A stretch of DNA of 64,000 bases, taken from the IMG/VR virus record IMGVR_UViG_3300046092_000062, positions 256,768 through 320,767 of that record. The stretch is one strand, 5' to 3'. The notes under the pieces were generated by a model. It worked only from the letters and a program-made list of their open reading frames with translations, ran no database searches and was not told the origin of the DNA. This document shows, piece by piece, positions 5,298-20,557 of the stretch. Each line of letters opens with the position of its first letter. Positions within the stretch are counted from its first letter, which is position 1. The position numbers were made by a program, and so were the translations under genes.

Positions 5298-5923
5298 TGT
5301 CTTTAGGTCATCTGATACCTAGAGGATACCGTCCCGGTAGTGGGTTAATATCCCCTACTGGGATTTTCTATCTAAGTATCCCCAAGAATGCCAGCACATA
5401 TATGACCAACTTACTGGTTGCCAATGATTGGCGCCACAATGACGTATACAGTCCCGATATTAAGGAATGTATAGTTGTTCTACGTGATCCAGTTGATCGT
5501 TGGCTTAGCGGCTTTGCAACGTATGCAGCCAGCTGGTTGCTCGGGGAAGGATACGGCAGTGATCACTTTAGGGAAGACTACAATGATCTCACACAGCGAA
5601 TCATCTTTGATCAAATTGTATTTGACGACCACACCACCGAACAAGTAAAATACGTTGAGCAACTAGGTGACCGTAAGATTACATTCTTTAAACTCAATTA
5701 CGAGTTAGGAATGAACTTAGAAAGTTTTTTAGATTGCAAGCTAGGTCTAAATAACCCTATAGCAGATAACGCAGGCGAAGACAATTACGATACTAAAATG
5801 ATTGCCAAGCACATGAGATTCAGAGTAGAACAAGATCCAGTTCTACGTGCTAAGATCATTGCGCGATATGCTGCTGACTACGAACTAATTAAAACAGCAA
5901 ACTATTACAATGAGCCAAGATAA
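5297..5923 (+). CDS. sulfotransferase family protein
   Basis: 5'-PSB-like YLSIPKNAST and 3'-PB-like VLRDPVDRWLSG. Confidence 0.75.
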   Translation: MSLGHLIPRGYRPGSGLISPTGIFYLSIPKNASTYMTNLLVANDWRHNDVYSPDIKECIVVLRDPVDRWLSGFATYAASWLLGEGYGSDHFREDYNDLTQRIIFDQIVFDDHTTEQVKYVEQLGDRKITFFKLNYELGMNLESFLDCKLGLNNPIADNAGEDNYDTKMIAKHMRFRVEQDPVLRAKIIARYAADYELIKTANYYNEPR

Positions 5924-7604
5924 TTTAACAAGCAAACAAAAAGATTACGCAGTATTCTTGCCAGCTATCAGTGGCTTCTACGGTACGTTTGTGGGCAAAC
6001 AGCGTGTTAACAATGACTATGTCGACCCAGCACGTTTCCCGCAAGGACTAACCGACATGGAGCAGATGAACTGGCTTAACGATCAAAAGGGCTTGTTCCC
6101 GTATAAGTGGAGTCTATATTCAGGTGGACATGCTAACTTGGATCTCACTAAAGAAGATGCAAGCGAAGACATGGTTCGCAAACGTGACCCAAACACTATC
6201 CTGCTAGGTGACTCGGGAGGATTCCAGATTGCCAAGGGCTTGTGGGAAGGCGAGTGGCGTGATCTTAATAGCCAAGAAGTTAAAGACAAAATGGCCGCAA
6301 TGGTAGCACTAGGTGTAGAAGTTAAGCCGGTGCTAGACAAAGCTGGTAACCCTGTTATTGGCAAGAAAGGTCCGAAGACTATCACAATCGACCATGCTAA
6401 AAACTATCAAAACTTAATTGATGCAGCACAAAAGAAACGTGGTGCTGTTCTAACGTGGTTAGATAGTATCAGCAATTACGGCATGGGATTGGATATTCCA
6501 ACTTGGGTTATCCATGACAAGAAAGCCAGCGATGCGTGTGGTATTAAAACTCTTGACGAAGCTGTTGCAGCTACAAAGTATAACAACGAATACTTCATGG
6601 CGCAACGCAAAGGCAAGAACAATGGCGGCGCTAAGTTCCTAAACGTGTTGCAAGGTGACAATCACAACAGTGCCGAAGATTGGTACCAAGTAATGAAAGA
6701 GTACTGTGATCCTGTTAAGTATCCTGATACACACTTTGATGGCTGGGCAATGGGAGGTCAAAACATGTGTGACGTACACTTGATTTTGAAACGTCTAGTA
6801 GCACTACGTTATGACAACTTACTACAAGAGGGCAAGCATGATTGGATGCACTTCTTGGGCACAAGTAAACTAGAGTGGGCTGTGTTGCTTACTGTTATCC
6901 AGCGAGCTGTGAGAAAATATGTCAATCCTTCTTTTACTATCTCTTTTGATTGCGCTAGCCCTTTTCTTGCAACAGCTAACGGCCAGGTATACTTCGAAAA
7001 CGTATTTCCGCACAACGGAAAGTGGAGCTACAGAATGGCTCCAAGTGCAGACGACAAAAAGTACGCCACTGACACACGCAAATGGTCAGACGGAGTGGTA
7101 CAAGACGGCATTTACCCACGCTGGGAAGACAGTCCCCTTAGTGACATGTTTAAAATGAAAGATATTTGCATCTACAAGCCAGGCGATCTTAATAAGATTG
7201 GCAAAGAAGGTGCAACATCATGGGACAGCTTTAGCTACGCATTGCTTATGGGACATAACGTATGGATGCACCTTACTGCGGTACAAGAAGCTAATAGACG
7301 TTTTGATGCAGGCGAACATCCTGCTATGATGCGATCAGAAAAGCCACTTGCACCTTACTTTGAAGATATTGTCGAAGCTATTTTTGCAGCACCCGATCGT
7401 GAAACAGCAGAAGAGATTATTGAAATGTACGGCGGCCCCAATGGTTACTGGACTGAGATTATTGGCACTCGTGGATTTAAAGGCAAGAAGGCAGTAAGCG
7501 CTCGCCCAATGTTTGATAAACTATTTGACGTAGAAGATCCTGTCAATGACGACGACACTGAATTCAACGAAGCAGCACTAGACAACTTAGAGGATACACA
7601 ATGA
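5910..7604 (+). CDS. dpdA: tRNA-guanine transglycosylase-like DNA 7-deazaguanine insertion enzyme (DpdA family)
   Basis: TGT catalytic motif DSGGFQ; LDIP; NVLQG; MHFLG; SFDCAS; clustered with folE/queD/queE in a phage. Confidence 0.8.
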   Translation: MSQDNLTSKQKDYAVFLPAISGFYGTFVGKQRVNNDYVDPARFPQGLTDMEQMNWLNDQKGLFPYKWSLYSGGHANLDLTKEDASEDMVRKRDPNTILLGDSGGFQIAKGLWEGEWRDLNSQEVKDKMAAMVALGVEVKPVLDKAGNPVIGKKGPKTITIDHAKNYQNLIDAAQKKRGAVLTWLDSISNYGMGLDIPTWVIHDKKASDACGIKTLDEAVAATKYNNEYFMAQRKGKNNGGAKFLNVLQGDNHNSAEDWYQVMKEYCDPVKYPDTHFDGWAMGGQNMCDVHLILKRLVALRYDNLLQEGKHDWMHFLGTSKLEWAVLLTVIQRAVRKYVNPSFTISFDCASPFLATANGQVYFENVFPHNGKWSYRMAPSADDKKYATDTRKWSDGVVQDGIYPRWEDSPLSDMFKMKDICIYKPGDLNKIGKEGATSWDSFSYALLMGHNVWMHLTAVQEANRRFDAGEHPAMMRSEKPLAPYFEDIVEAIFAAPDRETAEEIIEMYGGPNGYWTEIIGTRGFKGKKAVSARPMFDKLFDVEDPVNDDDTEFNEAALDNLEDTQ

Positions 7605-8104
7605 TCAGAGAAGGACACGAAGAAGTTAGATTCTTTCAAGGCAAGGAAGTAGAGCATACTCCTGCATTTGGAAAACAAACTCTATTTGTAGTGGGCGTAC
7701 AGCCATTAGCAGATATTGCCCTAAACCTACGCGGTGCGGACCATATCTACTTTGGTGCCAACATGAGCTTTCCCAATCCTGCAATAAACGATCCAGTTTG
7801 GAACGATTGGGAAAATATGATTCGACCCTTCTTGGATAAAGGGTACACTTGTACGCTAGATATTGACTCGAAATGTGCAGAAGGATTGCTAGAAAGTTCT
7901 CTGTGCGAGCATCATAACTTCATCCCAATGATTTCGGTGAAACTGCCGTATTTACAACAGCTAGGTTATAATGCTACAATCAAGCTAGATGACAAAGACT
8001 TTGCAGCAACTAACCCCGGTGTTTGGTGCCACAGTGTTCACAACCTTATGGATCGAAAAGTATTTACTGATTGGTCCAGCTATACGAAAGACGAAACTTT
8101 ATGA
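7601..8104 (+). CDS. hypothetical protein coupled to dpdA
   Basis: ATGA overlap; alpha/beta pattern (TLFVVG, HIYFGAN, CTLDID). Confidence 0.75.
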   Translation: MIREGHEEVRFFQGKEVEHTPAFGKQTLFVVGVQPLADIALNLRGADHIYFGANMSFPNPAINDPVWNDWENMIRPFLDKGYTCTLDIDSKCAEGLLESSLCEHHNFIPMISVKLPYLQQLGYNATIKLDDKDFAATNPGVWCHSVHNLMDRKVFTDWSSYTKDETL

Positions 8105-8286
8105 ACAATCTCAGTAAAGAGCAGTTACGTCTTGTGATTGCAGAAATGCGCCCAGACATCTCAGACAGCGACTTTGAAGCTATGTGGGAAGAAATGCAAA
8201 CTGCATGTACTACTCACTACTCAGAAGTAGCAAACGAAGTCATTGACTTACATACCACAACCGACTCACAAGGAATTATTAGATGA
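8101..8286 (+). CDS. hypothetical protein
   Basis: ATGA overlaps at both ends. Confidence 0.55.
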   Translation: MNNLSKEQLRLVIAEMRPDISDSDFEAMWEEMQTACTTHYSEVANEVIDLHTTTDSQGIIR

Positions 8287-8732
8287 GCCAACGAGACCAA
8301 GCACTAGCAGATAAGCGTGAGCGTATCATGCAACGTGCAGACCGACAAATTTGGGTAACCTTCAAGAAAGAAGGCATTCACAAATACCCAGCAGCAGCAA
8401 CAGACCCAGCACTAGCAACAGGCGACGAATATGATGTTTCGTTCCTTGGCTTGCCACATCGTCATATCTTTCACTTCCGTGTATGGATTGACGTGTTTCA
8501 CAATGACCGCGACATCGAGTTTATCCAATTTAAACGTTGGCTTGAAAACTTGTATGCCGGCGGTACGCTAGAGCTCAACTTTAAGAGTTGCGAAATGATT
8601 GCAGATGATTTGTACACACAAATCAACACAAAGTATCCTGACCGCAGTGTCTGGATTGAAGTTGCCGAAGATGGTGAGAACGGCGCTTTAATTAAATATG
8701 AATCTCACCGCCCACAACTGATTAGTATCTAA
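8283..8732 (+). CDS. dpdL: QueD-paralog T-fold protein (DpdL-like, proposed CDG decarboxylase)
   Basis: LGLPHRHIF matches LxxxHRHxF; SCEMIA resembles the QueD T/S-xE-x-I/L-A motif; separate canonical queD present. Confidence 0.65.
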   Translation: MSQRDQALADKRERIMQRADRQIWVTFKKEGIHKYPAAATDPALATGDEYDVSFLGLPHRHIFHFRVWIDVFHNDRDIEFIQFKRWLENLYAGGTLELNFKSCEMIADDLYTQINTKYPDRSVWIEVAEDGENGALIKYESHRPQLISI

Positions 8733-8743
8733 GGAAATATAAA

Positions 8744-9007
8744 ATGGCAAACGAACACCTGCAAAAGTACTTGAAGATGAAACCTGAAGTTTCTCGTCTA
8801 TTCAATGACCTCGAAGAGTACTTGGCGTTCTGTAAGAAGCAGGGCTACGTCTATGACGAAAGCCACCTCTACAACGAGAAAACACCGTGGGGCGAAATGC
8901 AGCGAGTTAAAGCTGGCAAGTTCCCTAAGGACAATTGGAGTCCATATCCAAAAGAGCGTCGCGAGTTTAAGCCTCGTGACAAAAACAGCAACTGGAAGTA
9001 CCGCTGA
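8744..9007 (+). CDS. hypothetical protein
   Basis: SD AAGGA; in operon. Confidence 0.7.
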   Translation: MANEHLQKYLKMKPEVSRLFNDLEEYLAFCKKQGYVYDESHLYNEKTPWGEMQRVKAGKFPKDNWSPYPKERREFKPRDKNSNWKYR

Positions 9008-9009
9008 TT

Positions 9010-9417
9010 ATGAGCGCCGCAACTGACATGGGCCAAGCAGAGTTTGACCTACAACGGGTCATGGATCTGTTTGACACTGCCCTAACCAGTAAAGATGAGC
9101 GTGTAGTAAACGCCCTTCGCAGTCTGTTGATGATTGTGGCGCTTACCAATCCCGAAGACGCCGATGCTAAAGGTGATATCGGTCCACTACGTGCAATGGA
9201 ACGTGATTTAAATTCCATGCACAGTCGTATTCGCAGTCTAGAAGACCAAGTACGCCATATTACTGATGCACTGTCTCAGCACAATACCGCTGCTCAATCA
9301 TATAACTCGTATAACTGGCGACCATCTAACCCTTATGCGAGAGATGTGTGGGGACAGGATAAGAGCAATATCACCATGCGCGATTACTTCACAAAAATTA
9401 ACGGAGGTCCCATTTAA
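9010..9417 (+). CDS. hypothetical coiled-coil protein
   Basis: heptad segment LRAMERDLNSMHSRIRSLEDQV; TAATG junction. Confidence 0.65.
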   Translation: MSAATDMGQAEFDLQRVMDLFDTALTSKDERVVNALRSLLMIVALTNPEDADAKGDIGPLRAMERDLNSMHSRIRSLEDQVRHITDALSQHNTAAQSYNSYNWRPSNPYARDVWGQDKSNITMRDYFTKINGGPI

Positions 9418-10595
9418 TGGGTAAGCTATATTACATGGGGTTAGAGAGTTACAAAGCTCGCTACACCCTGCAACTAACAGAATGGAACAAACGTGTCTTT
9501 GATCGCCGTGGCGTTGAAGCAGTATATGTTCCAGGTCTAACACTAGATAACAGTCAAAAGATTGTTACAGGACAAGTACTGGACGCACACGGTCGCAGCT
9601 ACTTTGGTATGAGCCAGATTATGAATTTGGTTCGATTAATGCAACAAGGAGCAGTGACTAAAGATGATGTTGTATATTTCGAAGACATGTTCCAACCAGG
9701 AATCGAAAGCCTACCCTACATCCTTAAACAAATCCCAGAGGCGTCGCGCCCAAGAATCTTTGTTCGTTGTCTCGCTCAGTCTATTGACCCTGACGATTTC
9801 GTACATGTTTGGGGAATGGGTGAATTTATGGGTCACTATGAACGCATGGTGGACAGCTTTGTTGATGGTGTGTTGGCCACTAATGAAGAAATGGTAATGC
9901 ACATGAAGATTGCAGGTTGGAAATCACCAATCTACAATATTTCAGGATTGGTGTTTAACACCGAAGAAGTGCAAGAGCGGGTGGGTAACAAGATTACTCC
10001 CTGGAATGAGCGCAAGCCCCGCGTGGTATTCTCTGCACGTTGGGACCAAGAGAAGCAACCAGACTTCTATATGGATGTAATCGAATCATGGCACAAACGT
10101 CATCCCGGCTCAGGCGTGGAGTTTGCAGTATGCTCGGGTGCAACACTAAAGAGCAACAATGACAGCTACATGAAGCGCACACGTGATATGCAGGCAGCAG
10201 GCTCGTTGACCATTTACGAAGACCTAGAAAAGAATCAGTACTATGACATTGTTAATAACTCTCGTGTTGTTTTTAATTGTGCATTACAAGATTGGGTCTC
10301 CAATACTGTCTCCGAAGCTGACGCTTTGGGATGCAATGTACTTTATCCTGCTTATCGTTCTTTCCCTGAAACTTTTGCAAACGATCATACTCGCATGTAC
10401 GTTCCGTGGAGCATAGATGACGCATTAGACAAGTTGGAAAAACTGTTGCAGAAGCCAAGTGAGAACATGGGCAAGATTAGCGCATGGACTAGTGGCACCG
10501 CTGATCGCATTGTTGACATTATTGAAGGCAAGGGCGAAAAGTGGTTGCGTATGTCAACTGACTATCGCAAACATACACATGAGTCTAAGTACTAA
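9417..10595 (+). CDS. GT-B fold glycosyltransferase (GT4-like)
   Basis: VVFSARWDQEKQP; VSEADALGCNVLYP; SFPE, typical of the nucleotide-sugar-binding domain. Confidence 0.8.
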   Translation: MGKLYYMGLESYKARYTLQLTEWNKRVFDRRGVEAVYVPGLTLDNSQKIVTGQVLDAHGRSYFGMSQIMNLVRLMQQGAVTKDDVVYFEDMFQPGIESLPYILKQIPEASRPRIFVRCLAQSIDPDDFVHVWGMGEFMGHYERMVDSFVDGVLATNEEMVMHMKIAGWKSPIYNISGLVFNTEEVQERVGNKITPWNERKPRVVFSARWDQEKQPDFYMDVIESWHKRHPGSGVEFAVCSGATLKSNNDSYMKRTRDMQAAGSLTIYEDLEKNQYYDIVNNSRVVFNCALQDWVSNTVSEADALGCNVLYPAYRSFPETFANDHTRMYVPWSIDDALDKLEKLLQKPSENMGKISAWTSGTADRIVDIIEGKGEKWLRMSTDYRKHTHESKY

Positions 10596-10764
10596 ACAAG
10601 AAATTTGGTTAACATTGGCTGGGGAGCAATACCCCAGCCTTAACGAAGACCAACTAAAGGCACTAAGCCTAAAGGCCGCCAGCGAGTGGTACTTGGGCGG
10701 TGACCCAGAGTTGGTCAACTTGTTTGATCAATACGTAATGCTAAAGAACATAAGGGGAGTGTAA
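10579..10764 (+). CDS. hypothetical protein
   Basis: fills operon gap; TAATG junction to next gene. Confidence 0.5.
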   Translation: MSLSTKQEIWLTLAGEQYPSLNEDQLKALSLKAASEWYLGGDPELVNLFDQYVMLKNIRGV

Positions 10765-11429
10765 TGGCTAAGTGGAGCATTGAAGCAGAACAGAAGAAAA
10801 GCGCACTAGAAGTTCAACTATGGTTTAAAGACGGCCAAACTATTCGTAAAACCGAAGGCTACCGTTGGGGCACGTTTGTTTGCGAAAGCGATGAGCGGCC
10901 CGATATCGATCTAGTTAACGAAGATAACGATTACCGCGTTGACGACGACGGCAACGACTGGGAGCTAGATAGTCTTAATGATGGTTGTTGGACTGATTGG
11001 GAATTCCCTGATGGTATGCCCAAGGAAGAGCAAGAACGTCTACAAGCACTATGGAACGAACTATGGTACGAAGGTCTTGAAAGCGAAGGATGGAGCCAAA
11101 ACGAATGCGAATACTATTTAAATGGCCCATTGCGACTGACTAACGTAGACACTGGTGAAGAATGGTTAGGATCAACTGACCCTGCCACTGTTGTGCATAC
11201 TATCGAGTTACCTACTGTGGCACCAGAACCATTGCTAACTGATTGGTTCCCTGCTAAAATTAACCCCGTACACAAAGGCATCTACGAATGTGAGATGTCT
11301 GAAGTTGATGCTTGGCCTTATCCAAAACAACTAATGTTGACTTGGACTGGTAAAGCATGGAAAGATGATGGTAAGTCCATTAAAGAAACCGTTAAGCAAT
11401 GGCGCGGCCTTGCTAGCGAACCTAAATAA
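10764..11429 (+). CDS. acidic, Trp-rich hypothetical protein
   Basis: SD GGGGAG; 221-aa ORF. Confidence 0.7.
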   Translation: MAKWSIEAEQKKSALEVQLWFKDGQTIRKTEGYRWGTFVCESDERPDIDLVNEDNDYRVDDDGNDWELDSLNDGCWTDWEFPDGMPKEEQERLQALWNELWYEGLESEGWSQNECEYYLNGPLRLTNVDTGEEWLGSTDPATVVHTIELPTVAPEPLLTDWFPAKINPVHKGIYECEMSEVDAWPYPKQLMLTWTGKAWKDDGKSIKETVKQWRGLASEPK

Positions 11430-11449
11430 TCATTAACTAAGGAAATAAA

Positions 11450-11632
11450 ATGACAAATCTACAACCACTATTTGACGCATACTTGGCAGAAAACGAAAAA
11501 TTCGAAGCCGGTAACAATGCAGCAGGCACTCGTGCTCGCAAAGCATTGCAAGAACTTGCTAAAGGCGTAAAAGCTCGTCGCAACGAAATTACCGAAACTA
11601 AGAACGCACGAGCAGAAGCTAAGAAGGCCTAA
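11450..11632 (+). CDS. histone H1-like Hc1-family nucleoid protein
   Basis: KFEAGNNAAGTRARKAL motif characteristic of the Hc1-like family; SD AAGGA. Confidence 0.7.
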   Translation: MTNLQPLFDAYLAENEKFEAGNNAAGTRARKALQELAKGVKARRNEITETKNARAEAKKA

Positions 11633-12616
11633 ATGTCAAAGACCGTTATTGTCACTGGCGGATGTGGGTACATTGGTAGTCACGTTGCACGGGCTTTCAA
11701 ACAAGAAGGCTACGCCGTACACATTGTTGACACTGTTTACCGTGAACACACTGTCAAGGACATTGACGGTCATTTGATCAATTGCTTTGCTAGCAAAGCT
11801 GCACTCAGCATGTACATCATGCTGCAACCAGACATTATTGTGCATTGTGCAGGCACTAGTCTAGTTGGTCCAAGCATAACTAATCCAGCAGAGTATTACG
11901 ATAACAACGTTAGTAAGACTATTAAGATGCTGGATGTCTTAAAGGATTTACCAAAGCGTCCCACTATTATGTTTAGTAGTAGCGCCAGCGTGTATGGCGT
12001 CCCTAAAGAATCACCGATAACAATAAACAGCCCCTTACAGCCAATTAGCCCATACGGTTCAACTAAGATGATTGTTGAGCAAGTGCTAAAGGATTACGGC
12101 AGTGCATATGGATTCAACACCATTTGCTTTAGATATTTTAATGCTGCCGGCGCAGCGGCAACTGGTGACTTAGGGCAAGAACCTGATGCAACACATCTAG
12201 TTGCACGTACAGTTGAAGCAAGCCTAAGCGGCAGATTAGTTACTATCAATGGTGACGACTTTGACACACTAGATGGTACCTGCGTTCGTGACTACGTACA
12301 CGTTTGGGATATTGCCGTGGCACACACTAAGGCAGCGGAATTCTTTGCTATCCATTATGGCCCAGACACCATTGCTGGACATCATGTGTTTAACTTAGGC
12401 ACTGGTAGCGGGTACAGTAACAAGGAAATTGTTGACTACGTTTACGAAACATACGGATTGACTACAGTCAAGTATGGCCCACGTAGACCCGGCGACCCAG
12501 ACTTATTAGTAGCAGATCCATCGGTAGCTAACTCAGTATTGGGATGGTATCCAATTAACAGCAGTATAAAAAACATCATTGATACAGCATATAACTGGTA
12601 CAAGAATCGTGTTTGA
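11633..12616 (+). CDS. galE: UDP-glucose 4-epimerase
   Basis: TGGCGYIGSH, FSSSASVYG, YGSTK, RYFNAAG, DGTCVRDYVHV, RRPGDP. Confidence 0.9.
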   Translation: MSKTVIVTGGCGYIGSHVARAFKQEGYAVHIVDTVYREHTVKDIDGHLINCFASKAALSMYIMLQPDIIVHCAGTSLVGPSITNPAEYYDNNVSKTIKMLDVLKDLPKRPTIMFSSSASVYGVPKESPITINSPLQPISPYGSTKMIVEQVLKDYGSAYGFNTICFRYFNAAGAAATGDLGQEPDATHLVARTVEASLSGRLVTINGDDFDTLDGTCVRDYVHVWDIAVAHTKAAEFFAIHYGPDTIAGHHVFNLGTGSGYSNKEIVDYVYETYGLTTVKYGPRRPGDPDLLVADPSVANSVLGWYPINSSIKNIIDTAYNWYKNRV

Positions 12617-13926: not shown

Positions 13927-14142
13927 ATGAACGCCGCAGACATGACAACAGCACTAATCAATCGTGCAAAGGTATTAAACGAGTTTATGGTCACTACTGA
14001 AGTGCCCAACGACTTTAGATTCAACGGGATGGTGCCATTTGATATGCAAATTAAAGATGGTATTATTTACGCACATGTTTGGGGCGTTGACTTTGACGAA
14101 GCGTGTATGCGTTTAGATCAATTTTTAGACACCTGCAAATAA
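13927..14142 (+). CDS. hypothetical protein
   Basis: SD AAGGA; in operon. Confidence 0.65.
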   Translation: MNAADMTTALINRAKVLNEFMVTTEVPNDFRFNGMVPFDMQIKDGIIYAHVWGVDFDEACMRLDQFLDTCK

Positions 14143-14150
14143 AGGCAGCT

Positions 14151-14609
14151 ATGAAGCAGTGGATTCTCAACTGGCTTGAAGCACACGGTCGCAAACGTAT
14201 TGTTATGGACCGTGTAAACAATGAACCTTATCTAGAACGTTACTATGTATTCCTTAAAGACCGTGAGAATTTTCCCTTTAACATTTTTCTGCACAAGTTT
14301 CTTAAGTCAGATCCCGATGACGTGCATGATCATCCTTGGAATTACCGAACTCTTATCTTAAAGGGCGGGTACTGGGAATGGCAACCCCAGTTTAACAGCA
14401 AAGGTCACAAAGTTGGTGAGATTGCAACATGGCGCGGTGCCGGATCATTCCGTAGTGCAAAAGCCAACAGCTATCATCGCATCGAGCTTGATCCCAATGT
14501 GGAATGTTGGACATTGTTTATGCCAGGACGCAAGCGACGCGAATGGGGTTTCCTTAGTAAAGGCACATGGGTACAATGGCAAAAATATCTAGCAACCAGA
14601 TCACAATAA
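14151..14609 (+). CDS. cupin-like protein (HDHPW motif)
   Basis: FLHKFLKSDPDDVHDHPW...ILKGGYWE...YHRI metal-binding cupin pattern. Confidence 0.65.
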   Translation: MKQWILNWLEAHGRKRIVMDRVNNEPYLERYYVFLKDRENFPFNIFLHKFLKSDPDDVHDHPWNYRTLILKGGYWEWQPQFNSKGHKVGEIATWRGAGSFRSAKANSYHRIELDPNVECWTLFMPGRKRREWGFLSKGTWVQWQKYLATRSQ

Positions 14610-14914
14610 TGAACGGATCCTATCCTGTAGACTTGTTTGAGCTTACCAAAGAAGCAGCCGAGTATCTACGTGCTCGTGGAGCAGTTATTCCAAGTAGAAC
14701 AACGTCGTGGGGCACTGTATCCTATCTAGTGCAGTTTCCAGGGTGCAAGCCTAGTTATACCAACCGCGCCGGCGGCAATACAGGTACTAGAGTATTCTTT
14801 CCAGACGAAGACACTATCCTAATGTTTAGCATAGTATACGGGCACCTAATACAGAATTGTAGAGTCAAGTCTATCATGGACATGATTATCAACGAACGGA
14901 TACTTAAACAATGA
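14609..14914 (+). CDS. hypothetical protein (dispersed small phage family)
   Basis: TAATG junction; RVFFPDEDTILMFSI motif. Confidence 0.6.
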   Translation: MNGSYPVDLFELTKEAAEYLRARGAVIPSRTTSWGTVSYLVQFPGCKPSYTNRAGGNTGTRVFFPDEDTILMFSIVYGHLIQNCRVKSIMDMIINERILKQ

Positions 14915-15249
14915 TTGCACTACCACCAGGATGCACTGTAACCTATGCAGTATGGATTGACGTTAAGGAAATGACCACTGAACTTATCGAGTGGTGCGAA
15001 CTAGTTGGTGGCCGTAAGAAAGTCGACAGCTACTACAATCATCGTGGCAACAAAGTCGATACAGAGTACATTGCATTTGGAAAAGCCAAGTGGTGTCACT
15101 ATCATCAAAATGGCAATGGTGGTGTACGCCTACACTTTCACGGCGACGATGCTTCAACTGCGAGCATGTTCTTGCTCAAGTTTATGGACAACGTAACCGC
15201 ACACAATTTAAAAGAAGTACAAGATAGAGTAGAACATGGATTTGTTTAA
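14911..15249 (+). CDS. hypothetical protein (dispersed small phage family)
   Basis: ATGA overlap; RLHFHGDDASTASMFLLKF motif. Confidence 0.65.
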   Translation: MIALPPGCTVTYAVWIDVKEMTTELIEWCELVGGRKKVDSYYNHRGNKVDTEYIAFGKAKWCHYHQNGNGGVRLHFHGDDASTASMFLLKFMDNVTAHNLKEVQDRVEHGFV

Positions 15250-16057
15250 AGGACCAGTGCCGCGACTGTTTGGGCACAAAGATAGTTTAAAAGATAACAA
15301 GTTTTTTGCATCCAACAAGTTTGTTATTAACCAACAGTTTGAAGCATTTACTAACATCTGTCCGCATCGCGGATTTCCTATTTTGCAGCCATCTGGTGTA
15401 GCAGACAACATGCGCTGCGAGCTACACGGATGGCAATGGAACGATGACGGGACACCTGCTAATAACTCAGCGTGTTTAAAGCCACGTAGGCTCACAGTAG
15501 GCAAAAGCGGGCTGATGTTTATGGACTGGCAAGAACCCTCTGATGCTAAATGGGTTAACGATTTGGCTAATGATTCGTTTACGTATAGTCATAGCACACG
15601 CCGAACTGGCACCGGTGATTGGAAGTGGCAAATGGAAATGCACGTGGATCTGCTGCACGTTGACAAGATTCATCCTTTGCTAACCAGTTACGTAGATATA
15701 AACAAACTTCAAACTGAATACGGTAGTGATTGGGTGTGCCAGCACCACGAACACGGATGGTGGTTATTTGTGTATCCATTTACTCATATTGAATGGGAAC
15801 CAGGATGCTTGTACTTTAGTGAAATGGTGCAGACAAACTACGGGTACGAGGTATACATCCATTACTTGTTTAACGAGTCTACTCCGCAGCATGTGCGTGA
15901 AAACTTTATCAAAGTAGCAGAAGTTACATTCGACGAAGACGTGGACGCAGTTAATCGACTATCTCTAAACAATAAATACAGAACACCATCAAAAACTCTT
16001 GACCCACTGGAAGTAGATATTAAGCACTTCTATGATTGGTATAAGGCAAACACATAA
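15236..16057 (+). CDS. Rieske non-heme iron oxygenase alpha-subunit-like protein
   Basis: Rieske CPHRG...CELHGWQW; mononuclear Fe motif EMHVDLLHVDKIH; distal ED. Confidence 0.85.
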   Translation: MDLFKGPVPRLFGHKDSLKDNKFFASNKFVINQQFEAFTNICPHRGFPILQPSGVADNMRCELHGWQWNDDGTPANNSACLKPRRLTVGKSGLMFMDWQEPSDAKWVNDLANDSFTYSHSTRRTGTGDWKWQMEMHVDLLHVDKIHPLLTSYVDINKLQTEYGSDWVCQHHEHGWWLFVYPFTHIEWEPGCLYFSEMVQTNYGYEVYIHYLFNESTPQHVRENFIKVAEVTFDEDVDAVNRLSLNNKYRTPSKTLDPLEVDIKHFYDWYKANT

Positions 16058-16950
16058 TGTACTGTAGAAACAATTGGCTCACTTATTCGTTTGGCGGAAA
16101 CCCTCGCCGTATTCGCGATGAGGATCTTACTGTACAATTTACTGAGCAAGCAGATAAGATAATTCCTCTAGACGAAGTAGCGCAAGCGACTGCAAAAGAA
16201 ATACACTCATTATACCCAGACATTTATGTTGCAATGAGCGGAGGGTGCGATAGCGAGTATGTAGCAAAGAGTTTTAAGGCCGCCGGAGTTCCATTTAAAG
16301 CCATTACAATGACTTGTAAAGGATACCTTGTAATCGGCGAATGGTATACTAAAAAATGGTGCGACGAAAATGATGTTGAACTAATCAAATTCGAAGTTGA
16401 TCCGTTTGAATTATTAGAATACGGTAAACGCACTGTGGGAAGAATCAAGGGCATTAGCTGGTTTGGCTCCACTGTTAATTTAGTAGCAAACGAAGTAGAA
16501 CGACGAGGGGGTTACTTAGTAACCGGAGCATTGCCATCGTACTACCCTGATCCAAAATTAAGATTAGACAAAGCAGATCCTGAATTTGTTAAAACATTTC
16601 GTGGATTCATGTTTGACGAAAGTGACTTCTACATAGAATTAGTAAACCCAAATAAGCATCCTTGGGCGTTCTTTTACTGGTCGCCCGAAATGTTGGCTAG
16701 TGTGATATACCATTGGGACACTTCTCAGCCAGTAGAGGACAACAAATGGCGCATGTTTAATGTGCTGCCTAGACCAAAACTAACTGGTTGCGAATTCTTC
16801 ACGCACAATCATATAGCCAAGACTCTTCCCGAGTACAACAATTATTTCAAATGGACGTATGCTCACCGCTCACTAAAATGGGGCGCGAGAGATTTTGCAC
16901 CTTGCCCTGACAGAGAAGAATTCTTAAAAATATTATGTCGGCCCCAATAA
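16057..16950 (+). CDS. PP-loop (adenine nucleotide alpha-hydrolase-like) protein 1
   Basis: VAMSGGCDSEYVA; C-terminal HPWAFFYWSPEML. Confidence 0.7.
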   Translation: MYCRNNWLTYSFGGNPRRIRDEDLTVQFTEQADKIIPLDEVAQATAKEIHSLYPDIYVAMSGGCDSEYVAKSFKAAGVPFKAITMTCKGYLVIGEWYTKKWCDENDVELIKFEVDPFELLEYGKRTVGRIKGISWFGSTVNLVANEVERRGGYLVTGALPSYYPDPKLRLDKADPEFVKTFRGFMFDESDFYIELVNPNKHPWAFFYWSPEMLASVIYHWDTSQPVEDNKWRMFNVLPRPKLTGCEFFTHNHIAKTLPEYNNYFKWTYAHRSLKWGARDFAPCPDREEFLKILCRPQ

Positions 16951-17789
16951 CAATTAGTGCCGGTCATAAGAACTGGTACTCAGTTACTCTAACGCCATTG
17001 CAGCATCCAGAGACTTCTACAGTCAGTATGAGCTTTGGTCACACAGAAGTCGATGGTACGCTAACTTTCCAAGCTGCGGCCGATTATACTGCAAAGTTAA
17101 TTGCGGCTCAATGCTCTAATCTCTATCTAGCAATGAGCGGAGGGCTTGACAGTGAGTTTGTAGCCGAAGTACTTTATCGCAATGGTATTCAATTTACTCC
17201 AATTGTTGCGATAACGCCCGACAACGTAGAAACTCATTGTGCATTGCACTGGTGCAAATTGCATAACTTAGATCCAGTGATACTTACATTTGTTGAAAAC
17301 GATCCTCGACTGATTAGACAGTTTAGATTAATAGCAAAAGAATTAAAACAAGCAACAGGCTTATCTAATATAGTGGCTTACTTAGCAGAGTACGTTAAAG
17401 AACTAGGTGGACAATTATTAGTAGGTGATAGCCCGTTTGGCGGCCCTACTAGCAGTTATTACCAAGCGTCTGGTGAAATATTTGAAATTGATTGGCACTC
17501 ATTTATTACAGAATTTATGCAACCTAATTCACATCCCGGTGCCTTCTTCCAGTACACCCCAGAGTTGTTTTTGGCTATGGCAAAAGAGCTTAATATCACT
17601 ATTAGTGAATCTGCAGGCAAGGCTGAGTTGTATGAAATTCCGTTTAAGCCCAAGGACCCAAACCCGGCTCTTCCTATATCACTAGCAGTTAGTAAACAGT
17701 TAGCAGAATTTGCAGGTGTAGGTATGTATTGTTTCTTCCCGCCGCTTAAATGGCACAAAGACCAATTGATTAAGTTATTGTCAAAATGA
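16935..17789 (+). CDS. PP-loop protein 2
   Basis: LAMSGGLDSEFVA; HPGAFFQYTPELF. Confidence 0.7.
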   Translation: MSAPITISAGHKNWYSVTLTPLQHPETSTVSMSFGHTEVDGTLTFQAAADYTAKLIAAQCSNLYLAMSGGLDSEFVAEVLYRNGIQFTPIVAITPDNVETHCALHWCKLHNLDPVILTFVENDPRLIRQFRLIAKELKQATGLSNIVAYLAEYVKELGGQLLVGDSPFGGPTSSYYQASGEIFEIDWHSFITEFMQPNSHPGAFFQYTPELFLAMAKELNITISESAGKAELYEIPFKPKDPNPALPISLAVSKQLAEFAGVGMYCFFPPLKWHKDQLIKLLSK

Positions 17790-18634
17790 AAATTGGACAC
17801 AACGGCTGGGCGTCTATTAACTTAGAAAGAGATAACCTAGTAAACATAACAGCACCCTTTGAATTCACTACTACCGCTGTGCCTGTAGCAATGACATTCA
17901 CCAAAGCTGCTGATTACACTGCACAGTTAATTGCAACCAAGTACACTAACCTGCACTTGTGCCTAAGTGGTGGACTTGATAGTGAGTTTGTGGCTAAAGT
18001 GTTGGTTAGAAACAGCATACCATTTACCCCAGTAATAGTGGCTGCTGACTATGTGGATGCAGAAAATTGGTACGCTTACAAATTCTGCCAAGACAATAAG
18101 TTAACTCCGCTGGTATTAGATTTTGCTGGAAAAGAAAAGCATATCGAGTTAGTTAAGATGCTCATTGCACATGCACACAAACATTGCTTACCATTTGATA
18201 GATCATTGATTGTAAACGTTGTTGCTACCCTACTACCAGAAGCGCATATAATAACGGGATACGGAGATCCTGTACATGTTTCGTCTACGTTTTACGAGCC
18301 AATTGGCCCATTGGTAGAATTAACAGACCACGATTACTTTCTGGACGTAGAATACGGAACTAAACACCCCGGTGCATTTTTTTCGTATACTCCCGAGTTA
18401 TTTGCTTCTTTGATTAAGGAGCTTGATATAACCAAAAATAGTCAAATGGCAAAAGCCGAACTGTATGGTATTCTGTGTAGATCAAAAATACAATCATCCT
18501 TTTTTAACTTTTACCATTTACCCGAACTTGAATTTATTATCAAAAAGAGTTTAGACAAATTAGGTAAAAACCCACTACACCAAGCGTTCTTTATAAATAG
18601 AGATACACTACTCAATCAGTTAAGCGGCCTTTAG
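17786..18634 (+). CDS. PP-loop protein 3
   Basis: LCLSGGLDSEFVA; HPGAFFSYTPELF. Confidence 0.7.
   Translation: MKIGHNGWASINLERDNLVNITAPFEFTTTAVPVAMTFTKAADYTAQLIATKYTNLHLCLSGGLDSEFVAKVLVRNSIPFTPVIVAADYVDAENWYAYKFCQDNKLTPLVLDFAGKEKHIELVKMLIAHAHKHCLPFDRSLIVNVVATLLPEAHIITGYGDPVHVSSTFYEPIGPLVELTDHDYFLDVEYGTKHPGAFFSYTPELFASLIKELDITKNSQMAKAELYGILCRSKIQSSFFNFYHLPELEFIIKKSLDKLGKNPLHQAFFINRDTLLNQLSGL
18592..18599 (+). promoter_or_regulatory. T4-type late promoter
   Basis: exact TATAAATA ~95 nt upstream of queD. Confidence 0.5.
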
Positions 18635-18688
18635 AGCATCATCCCGCTATACAAATTCTGCTGCCTATGCTACAATTAACATAGGAGA
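18623..18688 (+). promoter_or_regulatory. candidate structured cis-regulatory RNA leader of queD
   Basis: AGCGG/CCGCT stem 18623-18648; CCTATG(18664-18669)/CATAGG(18680-18685) stem occludes SD AGGAG. Confidence 0.45.
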
Positions 18689-18695
18689 ATAAAGC

Positions 18696-19193
18696 ATGAC
18701 ACCCGTTCAATACAAATACACCAGTACCAAAGAGTACCACAACGCCTTTCCTGTTGCTTACAGACAATGGCGAGCAGACAGCCACTGCAATCTAATTCAC
18801 GGCTATGCGTTTAGCATGAAGTTCTATTTTGGAACCAATGACCTAGACGTTCGTAACTGGGCTGCTGACTACGGCGGCCTCAAGGAACTGAAGAAAACAC
18901 TAGAAGATCAATTTGACCATACATTGATTGTGGCACAGGATGATCCAGAAATGGAAACATTCAAATTGCTACAAGAAAAGAACATGGCCAAGATTGTAGT
19001 GTTGCCAGCACTAGGTTGCGAAGCACTAAGCGATATGCTTTACAAGTATGTCAATGGCGTTTACATTCCTGAGATGTGGGGACCAGGTGAAGCGGCACGT
19101 TTATGGTGCTATCGCGTTGAAGTACGTGAAACACAGAGCAACATGGCGTACCGCGAAGGTCACCGTGAATGGAATGAGGACTTGTTTGCATGA
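18696..19193 (+). CDS. queD: 6-carboxy-5,6,7,8-tetrahydropterin synthase
   Basis: HCNLIHGY, DYGGLK, FDHT, GCEAL, VEVRET. Confidence 0.88.
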   Translation: MTPVQYKYTSTKEYHNAFPVAYRQWRADSHCNLIHGYAFSMKFYFGTNDLDVRNWAADYGGLKELKKTLEDQFDHTLIVAQDDPEMETFKLLQEKNMAKIVVLPALGCEALSDMLYKYVNGVYIPEMWGPGEAARLWCYRVEVRETQSNMAYREGHREWNEDLFA

Positions 19194-19486
19194 GCAAGCA
19201 GGAACAAGAAATCATGGATATTCTGCAAGAAGAATGTGCAGAAGTAATCCAAGCAGTTAGCAAAGCCCGTCGATTTGGCCTAGATAACTCTCACAAGTCT
19301 GGTAAGACACAGCGTCAGAATCTAGAAACAGAAATAGGCGATGTGCTTTGCATGATTGAACTGCTAAATGAGCGTGGAGTAATTGACGCCTCTAGCGTAC
19401 AAGCTGCTATCCTTGCCAAGCGAGAAAAGCTACACCACTGGTCAAATATTTTTAAGGATGACTCATGCACCCCAACATCGAAGTAA
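19190..19486 (+). CDS. MazG-like NTP pyrophosphohydrolase
   Basis: LQEECAEVIQAVSK...LETEIGDVL (ExxE..ExxD). Confidence 0.8.
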   Translation: MSKQEQEIMDILQEECAEVIQAVSKARRFGLDNSHKSGKTQRQNLETEIGDVLCMIELLNERGVIDASSVQAAILAKREKLHHWSNIFKDDSCTPTSK

Positions 19487-19683
19487 AAGAATTTACAGTC
19501 AAGGACGAACCTGCGTTCCGTATGCGAGTGCGTATGTGGAAATGCACAAGTCCAGCCGACCTAAATAGCTTAGAGATCGTGCAAGAATGTATGCGCGATG
19601 GCGAAGTCGACTTTGCTAGCACATACAATTTCCTAATGACAGACGAAGAACTAAAAACACTAGCACAAGGATTGATGAAATAA
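19465..19683 (+). CDS. hypothetical protein
   Basis: SD AAGGA; in operon. Confidence 0.6.
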   Translation: MHPNIEVKEFTVKDEPAFRMRVRMWKCTSPADLNSLEIVQECMRDGEVDFASTYNFLMTDEELKTLAQGLMK

Positions 19684-19684
19684 T

Positions 19685-20557
19685 ATGTTTGGAACAAATG
19701 AAATTATTGGTAAGAAGTATTTTAAGGATGCTCCGGCAGACAGCTTGTTTGTAACTAGCATGTTCTTTACACTACAAGGCGAAGGTCCTTATGCAGGTAT
19801 GCCCGCATTGTTTATTCGATTGGCTAAGTGTAATCTAGTGTGCAGCTTCTGTGATACATTCTTTGACGACGGTGATTGGATGACGTACGATCAAATCGAA
19901 GGCAAAATGTATGCAGCTATCAACGACTATTGGAACAACCAAGGCAAAGCAACGCCAACATGGGCAAACAATGGGTTAAATAACTATCCCGGTATTGTGT
20001 TGGTAATGACTGGCGGCGAACCTCTCCTGCAGGAGAACATTAGTGCATTTATGACACGTCAACTTGCACATTTCAAGGCAGTTCAGGTCGAAAGTAACGG
20101 CATTCCTGTTACTGATGTTCCTGCCGGTGTAACGCTAGTGTGTAGCCCTAAATGTGCTGAGAAAGATGGCAAGGCCATCAAGTACTTTGCGCCGTCGGCA
20201 ACTATCCTGCAACGTGCAGACTGTTTGAAGTTTGTTATGAGTGCGGATGCAGATAGTCCGTATAACAGCGTACCGCAGTGGGCACATGACTGGAAGGCAG
20301 CAACAGGCAAAGAGATCTATTGCAGCCCGATGAACGTGTACAACAGTTTCCCACAGAAGATCAAATTGCTTCGTGCAGAAAAAGGCAACATCACAATGGC
20401 TGAACGCAGCACAGTTGATGAAGTTATCAGCTTCTGGGAACCGGGCTTGTTGGACTTGAAAGCTAACCAAGCTAACCATGAGTACGCTGCACACTATTGC
20501 ATCGAACATGGTTTCAAACTCAACCTGCAAATGCACTTATATGCGAGCCTAGCATAA
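19685..20557 (+). CDS. queE: 7-carboxy-7-deazaguanine synthase (radical SAM)
   Basis: TLQGEG, FIRLAKCNLVCSFCDT, TGGEPLLQ, VESNG, CSPK, LNLQMH. Confidence 0.93.
   Translation: MFGTNEIIGKKYFKDAPADSLFVTSMFFTLQGEGPYAGMPALFIRLAKCNLVCSFCDTFFDDGDWMTYDQIEGKMYAAINDYWNNQGKATPTWANNGLNNYPGIVLVMTGGEPLLQENISAFMTRQLAHFKAVQVESNGIPVTDVPAGVTLVCSPKCAEKDGKAIKYFAPSATILQRADCLKFVMSADADSPYNSVPQWAHDWKAATGKEIYCSPMNVYNSFPQKIKLLRAEKGNITMAERSTVDEVISFWEPGLLDLKANQANHEYAAHYCIEHGFKLNLQMHLYASLA

Follow-up and report, generated by a model that had tools for sequence, protein, structure and literature searches.

A Phage 7-Deazaguanine Gene Cluster Accompanied by Sugar Enzymes in an Uncultured Jumbo Phage

Gene content of the locus

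The analyzed window, a stretch of 64,000 nucleotides, corresponds to the last 64 kb (positions 256,768 to 320,767) of the 320,767-bp IMG/VR contig IMGVR_UViG_3300046092_000062, a jumbo phage distantly related to Pseudomonas phage PA5oct. The locus directly follows PolB and consists of tightly packed and often overlapping ORFs on the + strand, as follows:

3581..4516 (+), class I SAM-dependent methyltransferase
4563..5297 (+), conserved 244-aa unknown protein
5297..5923 (+), weak sulfotransferase-like protein
5910..7604 (+), DpdA-like protein (564 aa), predicted DNA-guanine transglycosylase of a long, divergent subfamily
7601..8104 (+), 167-aa unknown protein whose start overlaps the dpdA stop
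8283..8732 (+), DpdL, a QueD paralog proposed as CDG decarboxylase
8744..9417 (+), two small unknown ORFs (87 aa and 135 aa)
9417..10595 (+), GT4-type (GT-B fold, retaining-type) glycosyltransferase
10764..11632 (+), unknown 221-aa and 60-aa ORFs
11633..12616 (+), UDP-glucose 4-epimerase GalE
12579..13214 (+), minimal (211 aa) DegT/AHBA-synthase-like PLP protein
13216..13917 (+), GTP cyclohydrolase I FolE
13927..15249 (+), variable block of a 71-aa ORF, a cupin (14103-14609), a 115-aa ORF and a 112-aa ORF
15236..16057 (+), short Rieske non-haem-iron oxygenase alpha-subunit-like protein
16057..18634 (+), three tandem PP-loop ATP pyrophosphatase paralogs (16057-16950, 16935-17789 and 17786-18634)
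18696..19193 (+), QueD (6-carboxytetrahydropterin synthase)
19190..19486 (+), MazG-like NTP pyrophosphohydrolase
19685..20557 (+), QueE (radical SAM CDG synthase), ACP17-type allele

The observation made in the initial annotation was confirmed, since every gene it had named was present and none was a chance ORF; the arrangement is not due to chance, as the same gene order recurred in 61 unique related loci. QueC and QueF were found neither by a motif scan nor by tblastn with a phage QueC and QueF, although it should be noted that the absence of QueC applies to this window only and not to the preceding 256 kb of the contig.

Sequence and structural evidence for the individual genes

The DSGGFQ motif of the DpdA-like protein (residues 101-106) was invariant in 10 homologues, whereas searches of Pfam (including the TGT and DpdA models), PHROG, NCBIfam and PDB sequences gave no hit. 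The three best PDB matches of its AlphaFold model (pLDDT 75) in Foldseek were tRNA-guanine transglycosylases (E about 1e-4), with Cap10 ranking 8th; hhalign related the protein to ACP17 DpdA (E 9e-6), and its Atlas neighbours carry the TGT and DpdA Pfam families. Its homologues in PA5oct and Vibrio phage 2.275.O sit beside queE or queF/queC/folE. A homologue of the adjacent 167-aa protein lies directly upstream of dpdA in ACP17 (33% identity, E 4e-14); family searches with this protein gave no hits, and its Atlas result was unreliable. The DpdL sequence contained LGLPHRHIF, which fits the LxxxHRHxF motif defined in PMC10516641, matched phrog_17812 (E 6e-37) and was 58% identical to ACP17 DpdL and 37% identical (E 9e-10) to phiST DpdL.

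For the glycosyltransferase, Pfam hits were below cut-off, whereas Foldseek with its model (pLDDT 74) returned the GT4 enzymes MshA, BshA, PimB' and PglA at E about 1e-10. The ACP17 GT ranked second in BFVD, hhalign gave 97% to the ACP17 and PA5oct genes lying between dpdA and dpdL, and identity to the BUCT-ZZ01 gene next to dpdL was 64%. GalE passed the NCBIfam TIGR01179 cut-off (287.8 bits against 262.3; Pfam Epimerase, E 6e-46). The short DegT-like protein (Pfam DegT, E 1e-13) lacks most of the C-terminal small domain but retains the PLP lysine motif SFGHTK...GRGG and WDSARR. FolE was identified by Pfam (E 5e-40), its NCBIfam matches (E 2e-40) being below the equivalog cut-offs. QueD (Pfam PTPS, E 1e-14; phrog_2389, E 5e-35) is a CxxxHGY variant, and this HGY variant is shared with the ACP17 and phiST QueD. 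MazG (Pfam, E 1e-8; phrog_4856, E 5e-22) has a counterpart in the phiST cluster. QueE (phrog_2076, E 4e-46; NCBIfam QueE models, E about 1e-19, below cut-off) contained the CNLVCSFC motif and was 43% identical to ACP17 QueE.

The cupin matched phrog_4786 "cysteine dioxygenase" (E 2e-41). The Rieske protein (Pfam, E 2e-9) had the [2Fe-2S] motif CPH...CELH (CxH...CxxH) and the mononuclear-iron motif EMHVDLLHVDKIH (E-x3-D-x2-H-x4-H), and no homologue was found in cultured phages. The three PP-loop paralogs contained the only SGGxDS motifs in the window and belong to an orphan phage family with 114 metagenome-only relatives and none in 50,697 cultured phages. In this family SGGxDSE was invariant, and its profile matched the TtuA/NcsA thiolase (E 9e-7) and NAD synthetase in the PDB, with no QueC; no Pfam QueC hit was obtained at E<=1, although Atlas neighbours partly carry QueC or Asn_synthase. 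Thus, these proteins are not QueC.

Among the flanking genes, the methyltransferase (Pfam Methyltransf_12/25/23/11, E 3e-9 to 6e-7) holds a conserved position between PolB and the module, but the gene at this position in relatives is mostly only about 30% identical. The 244-aa protein, which lies between PolB and dpdA, had no Pfam hit; its homologues occupy the same position in the clade, in PA5oct (EST35_0314, annotated as a virion protein by MS) and in Vibrio phage 2.275.O. The sulfotransferase-like ORF (Pfam Sulfotransfer_2, E 2e-4, below cut-off) was present in only some relatives. Of the two ORFs between dpdL and the GT, which had no significant family hits, the 87-aa ORF was conserved in most relatives and the 135-aa ORF in some. 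The 221-aa and 60-aa ORFs were patchy in relatives, and the C-terminus of the former matched phrog_26541 (unknown function).

Conservation of the accessory genes in related phages

Comparison of the 61 loci, counting only those reaching far enough, divided the accessory genes into two classes. The DpdA-like gene was universally kept in the clade; DpdL and the 167-aa protein were each found in 48/48 loci, the GT4 glycosyltransferase and GalE each in 30/30, and the short DegT-like protein in 22/23. A GT4 homologue also lies between or beside dpdA and dpdL, within 3 kb of dpdL and often immediately next to it, in six otherwise distant cultured phage lineages (ACP17, the PA5oct group, Phosso, X1/BUDD, BCSR5 and cyanophage BUCT-ZZ01), whereas it is absent from the group of Cellulophaga phage phiST, where plain dDG was measured (PMC10516641). 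By contrast, the cupin (2/21), the Rieske oxygenase (1/21), the PP-loop genes (4/21) and the 112-aa ORF (4/21) were present in a minority of relatives. They lie in a plastic FolE–QueD gap that also takes unrelated cargo such as ClpP, an FG-GAP protein and hydrolases; the 112-aa ORF accompanied PP-loop genes in 10 of 38 FolE–QueD intervals. Relatives of the cupin, Rieske and PP-loop genes also occur in phage contigs without deazaguanine genes nearby, and about 48 PP-loop-bearing viral loci showed no deazaguanine genes within 10 kb and instead neighbour 2OG oxygenases, desaturases and radical SAM genes.

The interpretation given in the initial annotation was thus partly supported. Its assignment of a DpdL-type deazaguanine DNA-modification locus with no canonical QueC in view was upheld by homology, motif and fold tests, and co-occurrence of the accessory genes with dpdA in relatives, set beforehand as a test, was observed for the GT-B, GalE and the short DegT-like protein. 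However, its grouping of all accessory genes as tailoring enzymes overreached, since this was not supported for the cupin, Rieske and PP-loop genes, and the further decorated base it proposed remains an inference from sequence alone.

Proposed pathway and alternative readings

The explanation considered somewhat more likely than not is that the locus is the DNA-modification module of a PA5oct-related jumbo phage, replacing guanine in phage DNA with a 7-deazaguanine derivative by the known QueC-independent, DpdL-type route. Homology to characterized enzymes underlies the steps in which FolE converts GTP to H2NTP, QueD makes CPH4 and QueE makes 7-carboxy-7-deazaguanine (CDG). The removal of the carboxyl by DpdL to give 7-deazaguanine (DG), a decarboxylase activity that has never been shown (PMC10516641), and the exchange of G in DNA for the deazapurine by the TGT-fold DpdA-like enzyme with its always-adjacent 167-aa partner are inferred from the published proposal and from context. 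Finally, it is inferred from co-occurrence that the GT4 glycosyltransferase is a core part of the module in this clade and in several cultured DpdL phages and that, fed by GalE (UDP-Gal or UDP-GalNAc), with the DegT-like protein, it most likely attaches a sugar to the deazapurine before or after insertion, or is otherwise required for the DpdL/DpdA step.

DNA as the target is supported by the position of the module directly after PolB, as well as by the resistance of PA5oct DNA to restriction enzymes in a pattern pointing to a modified G and the targeting of PA5oct by nucleases specific for hypermodified DNA (PMC12191111). In support of the GT4 as a core member of the module, dpdA plus dpdL of ACP17 alone, without the intervening GT, gave no dDG in E. 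coli, and the authors suggested that other enzymes may be needed (PMC10516641). Nevertheless, DG has no obvious hydroxyl or amine to glycosylate, so the acceptor atom is speculative. If the PP-loop enzymes act on this pathway, they would adenylate a carboxyl or oxo group (the 7-carboxyl of CDG being the obvious candidate) and substitute it with an amine. This link is weak and rests on analogy: the AsnB homologue CmoY ligates glycine to a carboxylated base in phage DNA (PMC12783734), the QueC-family enzymes QatC and Cap9 are proposed to ligate CDG to protein amines (PMC13329287), and PP-loop genes, with or without Rieske genes, recur in the FolE–QueD gap in subclades whose DpdA is 47-100% identical.

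It is possible, though less favored, that the phage makes only an already known base (dDG, perhaps some dCDG), that the GT4, GalE and DegT-like genes glycosylate something else, such as virion proteins or host envelope, and that the cupin, Rieske and PP-loop genes are unrelated auxiliary metabolic cargo in a plastic region. In line with this, phiST makes dDG with DpdA3, DpdL, FolE, QueD and QueE alone, GT4 homologues occur without dpdL next to GlmS and a BshB-like deacetylase in PhiXhv phages, and the window contains a second sugar-nucleotide module, other glycan-type genes and a carbamoyltransferase elsewhere, so that the GT could serve a non-DNA glycan; the absence of an obvious glycosyl acceptor and the PP-loop islands without deazaguanine genes point the same way. 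However, the repeated tight linkage of the GT to dpdL in cultured phages, its placement between dpdL and folE in 30/30 clade loci and the failed ACP17 reconstitution argue against this reading, such linkage being unusual for an unrelated function.

It is unlikely that the PP-loop paralogs are functional substitutes for QueC converting CDG to ADG and/or preQ0, which would yield the known dADG or dPreQ0 and a locus that is not truly QueC-less. This reading draws on the invariant PP-loop, some Atlas neighbour clusters having members with the QueC Pfam family, the position between folE and queD, and the QueC homologue (QueC*) of Campylobacter phages, proposed to stop at ADG (PMC10516641); however, besides the lack of Pfam and PDB QueC matches, the QueC zinc motif C(x)8CxxCxxC (PMC13329287) is absent, only one cysteine is conserved, the genes are missing from most clade members that keep DpdL, and DpdL co-occurs with them. 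Similarly unlikely is entry of the deazapurine at least partly before replication as a nucleotide, with conversion of the base by a phosphoribosyltransferase, dGTP depletion by MazG and another or additional role for the TGT-like protein, because, although MazG lies in the cluster here and in phiST, relatives carry a HIT-domain protein (20 loci) or a phosphoribosyltransferase (6 loci) in the FolE–QueD gap, and BUCT-ZZ01 has an annotated xanthine-guanine phosphoribosyltransferase between queE and queD, no phosphoribosyltransferase or HIT gene was seen in the window's own cluster, every deazaguanine-modified virus known carries a DpdA, taken as evidence of post-replicative insertion (PMC10516641), and the DpdA-like gene is kept throughout the clade.

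Thus, the core of the cluster is of a known kind, whereas the glycosyltransferase accompanying it suggests that the base may be further decorated in a way not yet described. A glycosylated deazaguanine is plausible, although unproven, and the product in these phages would then be something beyond plain dDG.

Gene content and family assignment of the locus

The region from 3.5 to 20.6 kb was found to be a run of co-directional, tightly packed genes following the gene for a family-B DNA polymerase. The features of this region to which coordinates are attached here were as follows:
908–3577, family-B DNA polymerase (PolB)
3.5–20.6 kb, + strand, the run of genes of the deazaguanine locus
16057–18634, + strand, three tandem PP-loop genes
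19685–20557, + strand, QueE

Family searches confirmed the gene list of the initial annotation. Pfam matches were obtained for FolE (E = 5e-40), a GalE-type epimerase, a 211-aa DegT-like protein and, weakly, Glycos_transf_1, as well as for a Rieske domain, PTPS/QueD, MazG and a radical-SAM protein. Matches to PHROG families were obtained for QueD-like, QueE-like, GTP cyclohydrolase and "cysteine dioxygenase" (cupin) proteins, while the QueD paralog fell into an unnamed family. The three tandem genes at 16057–18634 carried the only SGGxDS motifs in the whole window, and tblastn searches of the window with a phage QueC and a phage QueF revealed no match. Thus, the observation of the initial annotation was confirmed, although its description of the locus as QueC-less applies to the window, which is the 3' terminal 64 kb of the 320,767-bp contig IMGVR_UViG_3300046092_000062, and not to the genome, since 256 kb of the contig lie outside it. 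A megablast search of the locus against 50,697 phage genomes gave no match, promoter and terminator scans were at chance level, and no tRNA genes were found in the window. The coding strand switched at about 40.7 kb, with a matching turn in the cumulative GC skew.

The 564-aa transglycosylase-like protein had no match among Pfam and NCBIfam families (E ≤ 0.01), including TGT (PF01702) and DpdA (PF23859), or among PHROGs (E ≤ 0.001), and neither its sequence nor its profile matched any PDB entry; a fold search was needed instead. The DSGG[F/L]Q motif with the catalytic Asp was present as DSGGFQ, which was invariant in alignments of 10 and of 11 homologues, down to 32% identity, and the DpdA candidates of phages ACP17 and BUCT-ZZ01 aligned there with DSGGLQ. 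The AlphaFold model (pLDDT 75, pTM 0.79) had tRNA-guanine and archaeosine transglycosylases as its three best PDB Foldseek matches (E about 1e-4), with the TGT-like Cap10 at rank 8, which is consistent with a TGT-type TIM-barrel fold, although the TM scores by target were modest (0.27–0.48). Profile comparison (hhalign) linked the protein to the ACP17 dpdA product (E = 9e-6), and among ESM-Atlas neighbours, identified by feature similarity only, there were TGT and DpdA clusters. Homologues in cultured phages were limited to those encoded beside queE in the PA5oct group, and beside queF, queC, gat and folE in Vibrio phage 2.275.O, as well as a homologue in Sinorhizobium phage Phosso. Comparisons of the profile with the single sequences of phiST DpdA3, BUCT-ZZ01 UTS52034 and the X1 "queuine tRNA-ribosyltransferase" were not significant. 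Consequently, the protein is referred to as a divergent long DpdA-like enzyme and is not assigned to a named DpdA subfamily.

The 149-aa QueD paralog carried LGLPHRHIF, which corresponds to the LxxxHRHxF signature, replacing the QueD motif CxxxHGH, that was used by Cui et al. to define DpdL (PMC10516641), and aligned with LGSPHRHLF of ACP17 and LSLNHRHLF of phiST. It was 58% identical to the ACP17 DpdL (E = 3e-39) and 37% identical to that of phiST (E = 9e-10), a phage in which dDG was measured. The QueD of the locus had the CxxxHGY variant, as did the QueD proteins of ACP17 and phiST. QueE had the radical-SAM CxxxCxxC motif (CNLVCSFC), matched phrog_2076 (E = 4e-46), was 43% identical to the ACP17 QueE, and matched four NCBIfam QueE models at E about 1e-19 but below their cut-offs. 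Within the clade, QueE came in two non-orthologous types (window 19685–20557 and related loci L087, L089, L095, L097 and L100): the window and its nearest relatives had an ACP17-like QueE, whereas most clade members had a BUCT-ZZ01-like QueE (about 45% identity) sharing only the N-terminal cluster motif with that of the window.

The glycosyltransferase (GT) had a predicted GT-B fold with two Rossmann domains: the model (pLDDT 74) gave 266 PDB matches at E ≤ 0.001, and the top ones were the GT4 retaining glycosyltransferases MshA, BshA, PimB', PglA and TreT (E about 1e-10, TM about 0.6), whereas the Pfam Glycos_transf_1 match (E = 7e-5) was below cut-off. Residues Q291/D292-x7-E300 and R208...K213 were invariant, including in the short forms of 22–23% identity, and are read here, without support from a structure-based alignment, as a possible EX7E-type motif and phosphate-binding Arg/Lys. 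GalE scored above the equivalog cut-off of TIGR01179 (287.8 against 262.3 bits) and is a UDP-glucose 4-epimerase at the equivalog level. The DegT-like protein (Pfam E = 1e-13) kept the PLP-lysine motif SFGHTK and a conserved WDSARR segment, which probably carries the PLP-binding aspartate, but with 211 aa, compared with about 360 aa for the full fold-type I architecture, it lacked about 100 residues of the C-terminal domain; it was conserved at 52–91% identity and is thus under selection, although its activity is uncertain. No gene in the locus was found to require reading through a stop codon, and the only in-frame stop seen was in the DegT-like gene of one relative (locus L110, 7325–7930), which is either a pseudogene or a sequencing error.

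Synteny among relatives and comparison with described systems

A scan of IMG/VR revealed 305 contigs encoding a relative of the DpdA-like protein, of which 80 were retrieved. The presence of each gene was counted among 61 unique loci other than the window itself, considering only loci that reach far enough.

Presence of genes of the locus in related IMG/VR loci (present/loci that reach far enough)
dpdL: 48/48
167-aa gene: 48/48
GT-B: 30/30
galE: 30/30
short DegT-like gene: 22/23
folE: 23/23
PP-loop genes: 4/21
Rieske: 1/21
cupin: 2/21
112-aa ORF: 4/21

The DpdA-like gene was accompanied by folE, queD, queE and dpdL in the window and in all relatives. Co-occurrence of the accessory genes with dpdA in relatives, which had been set beforehand as a test of their role in tailoring the base, split them into a conserved sugar set and a variable set; thus, the interpretation of the initial annotation, which took them together as enzymes tailoring a candidate new hypermodified base, was partly supported.

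In the viral structure library (BFVD), the second-best match of the GT model was the ACP17 protein encoded between dpdA and dpdL, and profile comparison gave 97% probability both for that protein and for PA5oct EST35_0317, which lies in the same position. According to tblastn, GT homologues were adjacent to dpdL, or within 3 kb of it, in ACP17, the PA5oct group, Phosso, Xanthomonas phages X1 and BUDD, Burkholderia phage BCSR5 and Synechococcus phage BUCT-ZZ01, the GT of the latter being 64% identical to that of the window. The GT was absent from the Cellulophaga phiST group and from several other DpdL phages, and the gene following dpdA in Vibrio phage 2.275.O was not a GT homologue, so that the GT goes with dpdL rather than with this DpdA type as such. 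A GT4 homologue without dpdL nearby was found next to GlmS and a BshB-like deacetylase in PhiXhv phages (locus L163, Xanthomonas phage PhiXhv-15, 4747–7981), suggesting that the GT family may use UDP-GlcNAc and can serve other acceptors. A homologue of the 167-aa protein (33% identity) was encoded directly upstream of dpdA in ACP17, whereas an Atlas search with this protein gave only sub-threshold "Endonuclease_NS" look-alikes, which were rejected as unreliable.

The DpdL-type dDG system of Cellulophaga phage phiST (DpdA3, DpdL, FolE, QueD, QueE and MazG; PMC10516641) shares with the locus FolE, QueD of the same CxxxHGY variant, QueE, MazG and a DpdL with the LxxxHRHxF motif, and its cluster contains no QueC and sits next to the replicative polymerase. 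However, the phiST transglycosylase is a 259-aa DpdA3 with no significant profile match to the 564-aa protein, an ATPase is encoded between dpdL and dpdA, and GT4, GalE, DegT-like, PP-loop and Rieske genes are absent. The cluster of Acidovorax phage ACP17 (queD-folE-x-dpdA-GT-dpdL-queE) contains homologues of the DpdA-like protein, the 167-aa partner, the GT4, DpdL and QueE, but in a different gene order and without GalE, DegT-like, cupin, Rieske or PP-loop genes; ACP17 is a 156-kb T4-like phage for which no DNA modification has been reported, and its dpdA plus dpdL gave no dDG in E. coli (PMC10516641).

The Pseudomonas jumbo phage PA5oct (Wroclawvirus) was the closest cultured relative by PolB (50% identity), the 244-aa neighbour, the DpdA-like protein (32%) and DpdL (58%), with the order polB-x-dpdA-GT-dpdL...queE...FEN. 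Its GT is of the short 353-aa type, about 20% identical, and no GalE plus DegT-like pair flanks it, the only sign being a single weak partial GalE-like tblastn match (28% identity, 119 aa), while no DegT-like match was found. Restriction data indicate a modified G in PA5oct DNA (PMC12191111), although no chemical identity of this base was found in the literature searched. The GT-B DNA glucosyltransferases producing glucosyl-hydroxymethylcytosine in T4-type phages, which use a UDP-sugar to decorate an already modified base in DNA, serve as the working analogy, and DNA alpha-GT entries appeared among the viral fold matches (ranks 10 and 46). In contrast, the best fold matches were GT4 small-molecule or lipid GTs and not T4 AGT or BGT, the acceptor would be a deazapurine and not 5hmC, and the ThyA of the window is a canonical thymidylate synthase.

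Variable genes of the folE-queD gap and other gene sets

The three PP-loop paralogs formed an orphan family with 114 relatives, all from metagenomes, and with none in 50,697 cultured phage genomes. The PP-loop SGG[CL]DSE was invariant, and PDB profile hits were to TtuA/NcsA thiolases, NAD synthetase, GMP synthase, MnmA and TilS (E = 8.7e-7 to 6scy and 7.8e-5 to 3fiu), with weak Pfam hits to tRNA_Me_trans HUP, ATP_bind_3 and NAD_synthase, which places them in the PP-loop ATP pyrophosphatase superfamily. The possibility that these genes are QueC was rejected: none of 11 members matched Pfam QueC (PF06508) at E ≤ 1, no QueC structure was among the PDB profile hits, and the C-terminal zinc motif C(x)8CxxCxxC of QueC (PMC13329287) was missing, with only one conserved cysteine (C102) in alignments of 11 and 26 sequences. 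They are PP-loop adenylating enzymes and are not QueC. In Xanthomonas phage X1, a PAPS-reductase-family PP-loop protein (locus L164, 4341–4874) was encoded right after folE in the folE...GT-dpdA-dpdL-queE cluster, but shared only the P-loop with the paralogs of the window. The Rieske protein (Pfam E = 2e-9) had both the CxH...CxxH cluster (CPH...CELH) and the mononuclear-iron motif E/D-x3-D-x2-H-x4-H (EMHVDLLHVDKIH), as read in the translation, with no match to a curated full-length family. No homologue of the PP-loop or Rieske proteins was found in any cultured phage.

Participation of the PP-loop genes in the pathway is possible but not shown. In its favour, one to three PP-loop genes recurred between folE and queD in subclades whose DpdA was only 47–52% identical to that of the window, often accompanied by up to two Rieske genes, the cupin and the 112-aa ORF. 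The CmoX/CmoY carboxymethylcytosine-glycine system (PMC12783734), together with QueC and the QueC-like ligases QatC and Cap9 (PMC13329287), provides a precedent, namely, ATP-dependent amide ligases of the PP-loop class that activate a carboxyl on a modified base, or on CDG, and join it to an amine, which is the model for what the three paralogs could do to CDG or dCDG; however, the paralogs matched neither the Asn_synthase nor the QueC Pfam model and were variable in the clade. A strict link between the PP-loop genes and deazaguanine clusters was rejected, since about 48 loci with relatives showed no deazaguanine genes within 10 kb and contained 2OG oxygenase, desaturase, radical SAM and TctC genes instead. 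Moreover, the folE-queD gap in relatives usually held a HIT-domain protein (20 loci) or a phosphoribosyltransferase (6 loci) (related loci L019, 18341–18742, L015, 14101–14631, and others), and elsewhere carried ClpP, an FG-GAP protein and hydrolases. BUCT-ZZ01 has an annotated xanthine-guanine phosphoribosyltransferase between queE and queD; together with the HIT-domain and phosphoribosyltransferase genes of the gap, this hints at a nucleotide-level branch of the pathway.

A second sugar-type gene set was located 18 kb from the locus, and could supply a modified amino sugar for the GT4 or for another glycan. This set and two further gene groups of the window were as follows:
37773–41557 and 46094–47581, second sugar-type set, including canonical ThyA
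38681–39649, dTDP-glucose-4,6-dehydratase-like SDR
39631–40740, full-length PseC/ArnB-like aminotransferase
40733–41557, - strand, GNAT
46094–47581, - strand, NodU-like carbamoyltransferase
31900–34673, MoxR-like AAA+ ATPase followed by a DUF2201 metallopeptidase/VWA protein
50001–56544, - strand, five tandem radical-SAM paralogs (50001–51296, 51289–52497, 52484–53800, 53820–55169 and 55153–56544), two of them with an N-terminal SPASM domain, in a long minus-strand operon of mostly unknown genes

Inferred DNA modification and its significance

As far as the window shows, the core of the locus corresponds to the published QueC-independent route, from GTP to H2NTP, CPH4 and CDG, followed by a proposed decarboxylation to DG and insertion by DpdA. 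The gene content, motifs, family and predicted-fold matches and the co-occurrence counts were established in the analysis, whereas the exchange of guanine in DNA by the DpdA-like enzyme, the decarboxylation by DpdL, which has never been shown experimentally (PMC10516641), and any glycosylation of the base are inferred. That the target is DNA is likewise inferred, from the position next to PolB, the precedent of phiST, and PA5oct, whose DNA resists restriction enzymes in a pattern pointing to a modified G and which is attacked by nucleases specific for hypermodified DNA (PMC12191111).

The DpdL-type core has already been described, whereas the consistent association of GT4 with GalE and the DegT-like protein, the 167-aa DpdA partner and the variable PP-loop, Rieske and cupin cassettes have not; no mention of a glycosyltransferase was found in the main text of the DpdL paper (PMC10516641) or in full-text literature searches. 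Because the phages in which dDG was proven lack the GT, it is not needed to make dDG as such, and because it is tightly linked to dpdL in six otherwise distant lineages, the simplest reading is either that it adds something to the deazapurine or that it is needed for the DpdL/DpdA step in these lineages. The reported failure of ACP17 dpdA plus dpdL to give dDG in E. coli fits either possibility.

A more far-reaching and less likely, although not excluded, reading is that GT4 is an unrecognized core component of DpdL-type deazaguanine systems, forming with dpdA, the 167-aa partner and dpdL a conserved module in this jumbo-phage clade of more than 300 contigs and in ACP17, while the GT-dpdA-dpdL core, with no 167-aa partner recorded, recurs in PA5oct, Phosso, X1/BUDD, BCSR5 and cyanophage BUCT-ZZ01. 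In this view, these phages would carry a glycosylated 7-deazaguanine in their DNA, a class of purine hypermodification not yet described, possibly a C- or N-glycoside on the electron-rich pyrrole ring unmasked by decarboxylation; a glycoside on the exposed pyrrole carbon is chemically conceivable but is pure inference. In some sublineages, PP-loop ligases and Rieske or cupin oxygenases would diversify it further into amidated or hydroxylated derivatives.

Eight 7-deazaguanine derivatives are known in phage DNA, and none is glycosylated. If the conserved GT4 decorates the deazapurine, this would be the first sugar-bearing purine hypermodification and the purine counterpart of T4 glucosyl-hmC, with consequences for evasion of restriction enzymes, CRISPR and modification-dependent nucleases. 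The hypothesis is testable, since several cultured phages (PA5oct, ACP17, X1 and BUCT-ZZ01) carry the same dpdA-GT-dpdL core; it would explain the failed production of dDG with the ACP17 genes and would supply a candidate for the unidentified modified G of the therapeutic-candidate jumbo phage PA5oct. The variable PP-loop, Rieske and cupin cassettes, if linked to the pathway, would show combinatorial diversification of a DNA base under arms-race selection.
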